A stretch of 40,273 nucleotides of DNA from Octopus bimaculoides (taxonomy: Eukaryota), in the NCBI RefSeq assembly GCF_001194135.2, contig NC_068991.1, positions 21,272,287-21,312,559 on the forward strand, read 5' to 3'. This document shows, piece after piece, positions 3,071 to 26,762 of the stretch; position 1 is the stretch's first letter; each line of letters begins with the position of its first letter. Under the pieces are notes generated by a model. It was not told the DNA's origin. It was given only the letters and a program-made list of their open reading frames with translations, and searched no databases. The position numbers and the translations under genes were made by a program.

Positions 3071-3202
3071 TCAAATCACATCTTCGATTTTCTGTGGTAA
3101 AACACGGTTTACTGTTTCTGGTATATATATATGAAGTAAAATGGAAGAGACTATGCATGCAGTTCCTATGATAATACCTGGAGCCCATGGAATATTCAAA
3201 GC
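3071..3202 (-). CDS. SLC22 paralog A exon 10 (ALNIPWAPGIIIG...PETVNRVLPQKIEDVI*)
   Basis: Acceptor ttttctatccacag|GCT; PET..LP..IED motif; TGA at 3073-3071. The exact C-terminus is less certain (see findings). Confidence 0.85.
   Translation of the reverse strand, partial: ALNIPWAPGIIIGTACIVSSILLHIYIPETVNRVLPQKIEDVI

Positions 3203-26762: not shown

Follow-up and report, generated by a model that had tools for sequence, protein, structure and literature searches.

An SLC22 transporter paralog of Octopus bimaculoides that lacks the arginine network of its sister genes

The DNA described here is a 40,273 nt stretch of Octopus bimaculoides contig NC_068991.1 (assembly GCF_001194135.2, positions 21,272,287 to 21,312,559, forward strand), referred to below as the window. 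It is AT-rich (35% GC) and contains many microsatellites and 11 assembly gaps (runs of N). Its minus strand carries a gene of ten exons (26762..3071) with a coding sequence (CDS) of 1668 nt, which specifies a protein of 555 aa and ends in a TGA stop. All introns are of the GT...AG type with consistent phases, the 18 splice dinucleotides are intact, and the spliced protein is identical to NCBI XP_052827542.1 (P0038), [quoted passage not shown]. The gene is a previously annotated, divergent paralog of the SLC22 family, and its products differ from those of all other members of an octopod clade of such transporters at four conserved positions in transmembrane helices (TM) 2, 4 and 11. Comparisons are made mainly with three sister genes, P0045 (O. 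bimaculoides XP_052827540.1) and P0003 and P0004 of O. sinensis. The exons, with the residues discussed later (numbered in the window protein), are as follows.

26624..26762, minus strand: exon 1 (139 nt), ATG at 26762; N-terminus and TM1; donor G/GTATGT (slash at the splice junction), phase 1; same sequence as exon 1 of P0045
23260..23471, minus strand: exon 2 (212 nt); extracellular loop with Cys54, Cys80 and Cys100 and four N-x-S/T sequons
20197..20427, minus strand: exon 3 (231 nt); WDLVC motif, TM2, TM3 and first half of TM4; A143 at 20352-20350, T193 at 20202-20200 and, as the last codon of the exon, E194 at 20199-20197
18193..18395, minus strand: exon 4 (203 nt); remainder of TM4, TM5 and TM6; V197, A201 and W224
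16920..17255, minus strand: exon 5 (336 nt); QESVRWL motif and long cytoplasmic loop; homogenized with P0045
16264..16398, minus strand: exon 6 (135 nt); TM7 and TM8; D377 at 16391-16389, A381, and D406 at 16304-16302
9112..9197, minus strand: exon 7 (86 nt); TM9, FGHKVTLECFKTFSAVCIITASLIKFLA; 85–92% nucleotide identity at the paralog loci
6997..7055, minus strand: alternative exon 7b (59 nt, compared with 86 nt for exon 7), which replaces exon 7 in NCBI isoform X2 and encodes FCWSSWSLACVAGLLTAAY
5185..5305, minus strand: exon 8 (121 nt); TM10; A465 at 5255-5253, D475 at 5225-5223; ELFPTEI motif
3903..3975, minus strand: exon 9 (73 nt); TM11; M496 at 3953-3951, Q500 at 3941-3939
3071..3202, minus strand: exon 10 (132 nt); TM12, C-terminus and TGA stop

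The intact 555-aa frame had been noted in an earlier sequence-only reading of this DNA and is reproduced by the gene model. The exon 2 acceptor is TTTTACAG/CC, as supported by the NCBI isoforms; an upstream TAG was ruled out as the acceptor because it breaks the frame, gives a phase mismatch and disagrees with those isoforms. All paralogs share the junction of exons 3 and 4 (GMLTE/AFVLG), which the earlier reading had flagged as doubtful. The exon 8 acceptor is preceded directly by a (TTA)n microsatellite (5306-5330, minus strand), with no normal polypyrimidine tract. Exon 7b has AG/GT sites and phases that match those of exon 7, and its splicing into transcripts is predicted by NCBI isoform X2. 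Intron 7 of O. sinensis P0003 contains a segment homologous to it at 81% identity, and none was found in the P0045 or P0004 loci. None of the 11 runs of N overlaps an exon, every gap being intronic, and since the ten exon lengths are the same in P0045 and in the gap-free O. sinensis P0003 locus, an exon concealed by a gap is excluded. The version 2 chromosome record (GCA_001194135.2, CM046611.1) was rejected as an independent check on the gaps because it is base-identical to the window, Ns included.

An AlphaFold2 model made from a 24-sequence alignment (predicted template modelling score, pTM, of 0.76) has 12 long helices, with the TM helices mostly at predicted local distance difference test (pLDDT) values of 80–94. 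Low confidence is limited to extracellular and cytoplasmic loops, residues 304-346 having a pLDDT of <50. When the model was compared to the PDB with Foldseek, the best 41 matches were all SLC22 structures (URAT1, OCTN2, OAT1, OCT1-3 and OAT4), with TM-scores (template modelling scores) of 0.61–0.85. The Pfam domains Sugar_tr (98 bits) and MFS_1 (97 bits) scored above their cut-offs, and the curated SLC22 model TIGR00898 was matched from end to end, with residues 18-549 aligning to positions 3-505 of the 506 in the model. The score against the latter was 195.6 bits, below the cut-off of 550.75; the octopod clade as a whole scores 196–225, compared with 398 for a scallop SLC22, 584 for mammalian OAT3 and 667 for human OCT1. 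Despite the sub-cut-off score, the protein has the 12-TM major-facilitator fold and is a divergent member of the SLC22 family (Transporter Classification, TC, 2.A.1.19) rather than a non-member, and because the low scores extend to the entire clade, it is this clade, and not the single gene, that forms the strongly divergent unit.

The conserved SLC22 motifs and four-cysteine loop that had been recognized by eye were all found. The motifs are KSIVSQWDLVC, YLIERFGRKP (LIERFGRKP, with Glu instead of Asp, as throughout the clade), CELYPKKKR, QESVRWL and ELFPTEIR, and the 24-sequence alignment shows no variation at E206, R213, E266, S267, W270, L271, E481, P484, T485 and R488. The first, second, fourth and fifth of these motifs correspond to the family signatures STIVTEWDLVC-like ahead of TM2, G-x3-D/E-R-x-G-R-K/R between TM2 and TM3, PESPRWL-like following TM6 and ELYPT..R following TM10, and the large cytoplasmic loop typical of the family lies between TM6 and TM7. 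The extracellular loop between TM1 and TM2 (residues ~46-126) holds Cys54, Cys80 and Cys100, together with Cys122 of the WDLVC motif, all in columns that are at least 90% conserved, as well as the four N-x-S/T sequons; OCT1 carries more loop cysteines.

Residues were mapped to human SLC22 proteins by three MAFFT alignments of different composition and by a HMMER alignment to URAT1, using OCT1 and OAT1 reference sequences verified at 100% against PDB 8sc1_A and 9j02_A, and an OCTN2 sequence taken from the alignment to 9pdq_A. The eight correspondences to OCT1 proposed by eye, and an additional Asp in TM10 (D475), were reproduced by all MAFFT alignments: K214 corresponds to E194, W217 to V197, Y221 to A201, D357 to D377, Y361 to A381, E386 to D406, R439 to A465, and D474 to Q500. 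The column of Q500 is also that of OAT1 R466, OCTN2 R471 and URAT1 R477, and the HMMER alignment provides independent support for the C-terminal positions. A143, T193, M496 and Q500 align to OCTN2 S157, Q207, S467 and R471, respectively, and M496 and Q500 to OAT1 S462 and R466. OCTN2 Q207 falls in the column of clade residue R193 both by MAFFT and by a gapless count from the conserved Glu. The mapped mid-membrane charges of the window protein are four acids (E194, D377, D406 and D475) and zero bases. The earlier statement that basic residues are absent therefore holds for the mapped mid-membrane positions but not for the outer half of TM4, where R186 (the OCT1 R206 column) is still present.

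The choice of SLC22 proteins between anions, cations and zwitterions is usually ascribed to a single TM11 residue (Asp in OCTs, Arg in OATs and OCTNs) and its partners. The window protein fits neither the OCT nor the OAT pattern, as had been proposed, since it has neither the OCT-type TM11 Asp and TM4 Lys nor the TM11 Arg of OATs and OCTNs. At OCT positions it carries Q500 (for D474), E194 (K214), A465 (R439) and, conservatively, D406 (E386), while the aromatic cavity of OCTs is replaced by V197 (W217), A201 (Y221), W224 (F244) and A381 (Y361). The OAT feature of a TM11 Arg (OAT1 R466, URAT1 R477) with Ser or Thr four residues upstream is found in all sister paralogs, but here the two positions are Q500 and M496. 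Of the OAT gating salt bridge between TM8 Asp and TM10 Lys (D378-K431), the acid is kept as D406 but the Lys position is A465; TM8 Lys382 and TM7 Tyr353/Tyr354 are represented by N410 and A381/S382, and the K431, Lys382 and Tyr353/Tyr354 features are absent across the clade. The OCTN network of R471, S467, S157 and Q207 is represented by Q500, M496, A143 and T193; of the OCTN aromatic cage (Y239, Y358) W224 is kept and the Y358 position is A381.

The distribution of these traits emerged from a residue census that covered about 20 octopod paralogs, all octopod fragments retrieved, and 138 representative sequences drawn from 1.84 billion proteins by exhaustive search. Some 35 sequences form a clade to which, in the exhaustive search, no genera other than Octopus and Argonauta contributed; the closest protein of a cuttlefish follows the pattern usual for invertebrate SLC22s. 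Common to the clade are a Glu at the OCT1 K214 column, a TM10 without Lys or Arg but with an Asp, a TM7 without Tyr-Tyr, and a Trp at the OCT1 F244 column, so that the center of the cavity presents an Arg-Glu pair in TM4, acids in TM7, TM8 and TM10, and Thr-x-x-x-Arg in TM11. Of 130 SLC22-like representatives, 113 have Arg or Lys at the TM11 column; uncharged residues are rare there but do occur, with one other Gln in a Lymnaea protein. The rewritten cavity, which the sequence-only reading attributed to this gene, is consequently for the most part a property of the clade: six of the eight substitutions and the extra Asp occur throughout the ~35 sequences. That reading had itself named such sharing as a refuting outcome, although the pattern is not common in other invertebrate SLC22s. 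What does belong to this gene alone are four losses, a distinction that the earlier reading did not know of. Two proteins with 34–35% identity, P0048 (Argonauta hians) and P0052 (Octopus vulgaris), look intermediate between the ordinary invertebrate and clade patterns; both keep one TM7 Tyr and the TM11 S..R and lack the TM10 Lys, P0048 has the TM10 Asp, and they could help to order the steps by which the cavity of the clade originated. A search of the literature on octopus SLC22 returned nothing relevant, and no paper on an Octopoda-only SLC22 expansion was found. Automated names such as 'organic anion transporter 3' and 'SLC22 member 8-like' are a poor fit to this divergent expansion.

The four gene-specific changes are G143A in TM2, R193T in TM4, and T496M and R500Q in TM11. 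Among the ~35 clade sequences they occur only in the products of this gene, all other members having an Arg before the TM4 Glu ('RE'), the TM11 Thr-x-x-x-Arg and an invariant TM2 Gly. Of the clade-invariant residues G143, R193-E194, D475, and T496 with R500, the window protein keeps only E194 and D475. R193T is a transversion (AGA to ACA), while T496M (ACG to ATG) and R500Q (CGA to CAA) are CpG transitions, the commonest type of mutation. In all, nine of 142 clade-conserved sites are altered in the window gene, and four of the nine make up the entire conserved part of a TM2-TM4-TM11 network; deep paralogs with 10–18 changes at conserved sites have none at 143, 193, 496 or 500. Random placement would produce the four network changes with a post hoc probability of about 8e-6.

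The corresponding residues in human transporters are linked to one another. In OCTN2, R471 binds the carboxylate of carnitine and forms a hydrogen bond with S467, itself bonded to S157 of TM2, and a water molecule connects R471 to Q207 in TM4; the R471A mutant gives no current (PMC12780140). In OAT1, R466, which is stapled to S462 and T463, holds chloride or the anionic group, and both R466A and R466K are inactive (PMC10643130), while OCT1 has a K214-D474 salt bridge at the same TM4/TM11 interface (PMC10567722). In OAT1, URAT1 and OCTN2 the TM11 Arg holds an anionic group or chloride and gates TM11 (PMC12780140, PMC10643130). By analogy with the OCT1, OCTN2 and OAT1 structures, residues 143, 193, 194, 496 and 500 would be in contact with each other. 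The sisters would most likely carry a '+ - +' cluster (R193, E194, R500) at the charge-selectivity site, and the window protein a '0 - 0' cluster.

By identity (81–85% to P0045, P0003 and P0004), identical exon lengths and position in the cluster on CM046611.1, the window gene is a clade member by descent, and by its residues an outlier in sequence. Comparison with P0045, which lies about 50 kb away, reveals gene conversion in exons 1, 2 and 5, where there are 0.000, 0.038 and 0.030 differences per site, compared to 0.09–0.15 in the TM-coding exons. Because of this conversion the gene tree is poorly resolved: 14 topologies were evaluated, and several lie within 3–4 log-likelihood (lnL) units of the best. 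The O. sinensis counterpart of P0045, by both position and sequence, is P0004. An additional minus-strand paralog lies tail to tail with P0045 (locus L005, about 46292-47952, CM046611.1); its exon 9 encodes RSAGSGFATISVRIVG, with the Thr and Arg kept, its C-terminus is closest to that of O. sinensis P0003, and it is probably the P0003 ortholog. P0003 was consequently rejected as the positional ortholog of the window gene, which has no annotated 1:1 ortholog in O. sinensis. In the unconverted exons the synonymous divergence (dS) of the window gene from the others is 0.17–0.22, about equal to or slightly more than the ortholog distance of 0.144. A protein search with only the C-terminal part, intended to reveal transcript-derived fragments, gave no matches.

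For tests of selection, CDSs were taken from the loci by exact spliced matching and analyzed with GY94/F3x4 branch models. Because conversion leaves the tree unresolved, the branch was examined on four topologies and, separately, with the unconverted exons alone. The ratio of nonsynonymous to synonymous rates (dN/dS, or omega) on the terminal branch of the window gene was 0.76–0.90 across the four topologies, compared with a background of 0.375 (p = 0.005–0.007), but was not different from 1 (p = 0.26–0.76; 95% profile interval about 0.5–1.9). With unconverted exons only, the values were 0.79–1.05 against 0.445 (p ~0.04). When the three sister genes were taken as foreground, omega was 0.32–0.48, with no significant difference from background. 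Unique changes numbered 39 nonsynonymous (N) and 20 synonymous (S) in the window gene, compared with 17/20, 20/20 and 9/7 in the sisters; the 39 replacements and 20 synonymous changes lie across seven exons, and the replacements are mostly conservative hydrophobic swaps. The omega data cannot separate relaxed constraint from positive selection.

The open reading frame (ORF) provides a second line of evidence. Intron flanks can be aligned between paralogs, with a pairwise divergence of ~0.18–0.20 and ~0.05 indels per substitution, and the window branch amounts to 0.04–0.08 neutral substitutions per site. Had this branch been neutral, 2.6–5 nonsense mutations and 3–7 indels would be expected, and the probability of an intact, indel-free ORF would be 1e-4 to 3e-3; the ORF of the window gene contains no stops or indels. 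When ORF survival and the omega profile are combined, by our own arithmetic, a maintained ORF with elevated omega outperforms even the best 'recently dead' mixture by ~3 lnL units, which makes the mixture ~20-fold less likely. The proposal that the intact frame reflects selection thus fares unevenly, since a branch dN/dS of ~0.8–0.9 is not distinguishable from 1, while the intact ORF counters long-standing neutrality. Taken together, these estimates moderately, although not decisively, favor a maintained, fast-diverging gene over a dead one.

The explanation we prefer, and to which we would give roughly even chances, is a maintained transporter gene that has lost anion/carboxylate recognition and has an acidic, possibly cation-preferring cavity. 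The sisters have an OAT/OCTN-type arginine site, with Thr-x-x-x-Arg in TM11 and Arg-Glu in TM4. In this paralog the arginine network has been dismantled by G143A, R193T, T496M and R500Q with the four acids retained, taking the TM4-TM11 cluster from '+ - +' to '0 - 0', and the charge preference may have shifted from anions and carboxylates to neutral or cationic solutes, or transport may have weakened. Replacements have accumulated near the neutral rate, yet the ORF and splice sites are kept, as would befit a maintained duplicate rather than a long-dead pseudogene. We infer both the continued transport activity of the protein and the direction of its change in selectivity; a shift towards cations is electrostatically plausible. 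Several points weigh against this explanation. Replacement of the equivalent Arg in OAT1, OCTN2 and URAT1 abolishes or cripples transport (PMC10643130, PMC12780140), so that loss of activity is the simplest functional prediction. Constraint on the protein sequence is not demonstrated, as dN/dS is indistinguishable from 1; CpG transitions account for two of the four key changes, as expected under relaxed constraint; and the excess of replacements in the cavity helices (26N/11S, against 13N/9S elsewhere) is not significant. Gene conversion blurs the tree, the probability given above for the four network changes was computed after the pattern had been recognized, and the cavity exposure of R193/T193 and of D475 is predicted from homology alone. 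Four unpaired acids in mid-membrane could also destabilize the protein.

The main competitor, a serious one that we nevertheless consider clearly less probable, is a decaying duplicate in a redundant tandem cluster, which has lost its key Arg, is non-functional or nearly so, and has an intact ORF only because the loss is recent. A branch omega of 0.76–1.05 that is indistinguishable from 1, a number of unique replacements double that of the sisters at similar synonymous counts, the CpG origin of R500Q and T496M, the essential nature of the equivalent Arg in OAT1, OCTN2 and URAT1, the many close paralogs that could cover the function, and the absence of an annotated 1:1 ortholog from O. sinensis would all suit such decay. 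It is harder to reconcile with unchanged exon lengths, 18 intact splice dinucleotides and no stop or indel despite ~0.05–0.09 substitutions per site on the branch. An average omega of 0.8–0.9 would need a mostly neutral branch, which the intact ORF contradicts (hence the ~20-fold deficit of the best mixture), and the replacements are mostly conservative hydrophobic, the altered conserved sites cluster in a single network instead of being scattered, and several spliced isoforms are predicted by NCBI. A more specific and rather doubtful form of the maintained-gene explanation is a recent natural switch of charge selectivity, in which, from an ancestor with an OAT/OCTN-type arginine site, the loss of R193 and R500 (with their partners G143 and T496) would expose E194 to form a cation-binding site, and so yield an octopus-specific amine or cation carrier. 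Such an E194-based site, which we regard with the same doubt, would mimic the role of the OCT TM11 Asp from the opposite helix.

Somewhat less likely still is the original proposal of the sequence-only reading, in which selection would have remade the entire cavity of this gene to carry substrates that are polycationic or bulky, with polyamines, biogenic amines or guanidinium compounds as speculative examples. The four acids and no base at the center of the cavity, the small residues at most of the OCT1 aromatic positions, the change of local TM4/TM11 net charge from +1 in the sisters to -1, and the maintained ORF are in keeping with a dedicated cation carrier, but the extra Asp and six of the eight substitutions cited for it occur across the clade and are older than this gene, positive selection is not demonstrated (omega is not >1 and N/S in the cavity helices is not significantly raised), and small-for-aromatic swaps alone do not predict bulky or polycationic ligands. 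Coleoid cephalopods recode their proteins extensively, and the Q/R site of GluA2 is a parallel for editing at Q500: as the codon change was CGA to CAA, A-to-I editing of the middle base would again read CGA (Arg), restoring the clade-invariant Arg in some transcripts and making the charge switchable. We consider this very improbable, given the low prior for any particular adenosine, the lack of reported editing of this gene in the literature data searched, pre-mRNA around exon 9 without unusual structure (z = 0.19), and the inability of editing to restore the clade residues at T193, M496 and A143. An artefact of assembly or annotation, with odd residues or frame arising from gaps, a paralog chimera or sequencing error, is even harder to credit. 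The window does contain 11 gaps, the version 2 chromosome record is the same sequence, and mis-assembly or gene conversion could occur between paralogs this similar, but all gaps are intronic, the exon structure equals that of gap-free relatives, 39 plus 20 unique changes over seven exons do not resemble error or a chimera of known paralogs, and the flanking introns are alignable but ~18–20% diverged.

If the gene is decaying, it would be a routine case of birth-and-death evolution within a tandem gene family. P0045, with the full arginine network, and the window gene, without it, make up a matched natural pair (85% identical, in the same cluster) and are suited to the question of whether this network alone sets charge preference and gating.

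Other features of the window and its surroundings are the following. The order of the cluster is the window gene, the P0007 gene, a Tc3 transposase remnant, P0045 and the further minus-strand paralog (CM046611.1). The start of the second gene, and remnants of Tc1/mariner-type transposases, none of which is intact, are found within the window.

39893..40046, plus strand: exon 1 (154 nt, ATG at 39893) of P0007 ('SLC22 member 6-A', 579 aa), a clade paralog placed head to head with the window gene
21813-22181, plus strand: transposase remnant (HTH_32/HTH_48) in intron 2
27527-28458, plus strand: Tc3 helix-turn-helix (HTH) remnant just upstream of the gene, split into several ORFs
31969-32277, plus strand, and 36469-36657, minus strand: further remnants, the additional types being a partial DDE Transposase_1 and another HTH_48

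About 13 kb of intergenic DNA separates the window gene from that of P0007, and a shared bidirectional regulatory region is possible. The introns are packed with di-, tri- and tetranucleotide repeats that give rise to long but spurious ORFs of poly-Leu, poly-Ile and poly-Tyr, and many of the gaps adjoin such repeats. A short interspersed repeat is present on both strands (about 5574-5744, 7227-7290, 8045-8227 and 11123-11200), with the translated signature ...ISPGVLT.LPAHR... and DNA that includes GCCGAACCGTTAGCATGCCGGGCAAAATGCTTAGCGGC; one copy lies ~200 nt upstream of exon 7b.

Among known systems, the nearest are P0045 and O. sinensis P0003/P0004 ('SLC22 member 8-like'), which like the window gene have ten exons of the same lengths and belong to the same chromosome cluster. 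They share with it E194, D377, an acid at position 406 (Asp or Glu), D475, W224, a TM10 without Lys or Arg and a TM7 without Tyr-Tyr, but differ in having G143, R193, T496 and R500 in place of A, T, M and Q, and in branches that evolve at an omega of 0.32–0.48 rather than 0.76–0.90. Ordinary invertebrate SLC22s, such as those of scallop (P0033) and cuttlefish (P0053), are of the same family and overall architecture, and have the pattern QQ (TM4), YY (TM7), E (TM8), K (TM10) and S-x-x-x-R (TM11). The human proteins OCTN2 (SLC22A5; 9pdq), OAT1 (SLC22A6; 9j02 and 8bvr) and URAT1 (SLC22A12) share the fold and motifs (TM-scores of 0.61–0.81) at only ~18–22% identity in the Foldseek alignments. Their TM11 Ser/Thr-x-x-x-Arg module, which serves in carboxylate, urate or chloride binding and in TM11 gating, is present in the sisters and gone from the window gene, and the window protein also lacks the equivalents of OAT1 K382, K431 and Y353/Y354, and of the OCTN2 cage residue Y358. 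Human OCT1 (SLC22A1; 8sc1) is similar in fold and motifs, in the TM8 acid (D406 for E386) and TM7 Asp (D377 for D357), and in having a net acidic cavity, from which a cation preference of the window protein may follow. The window protein differs from it in having E194 opposite Q500 where OCT1 forms the K214-D474 salt bridge, in lacking R439, and in carrying V, A and A for W217, Y221 and Y361.

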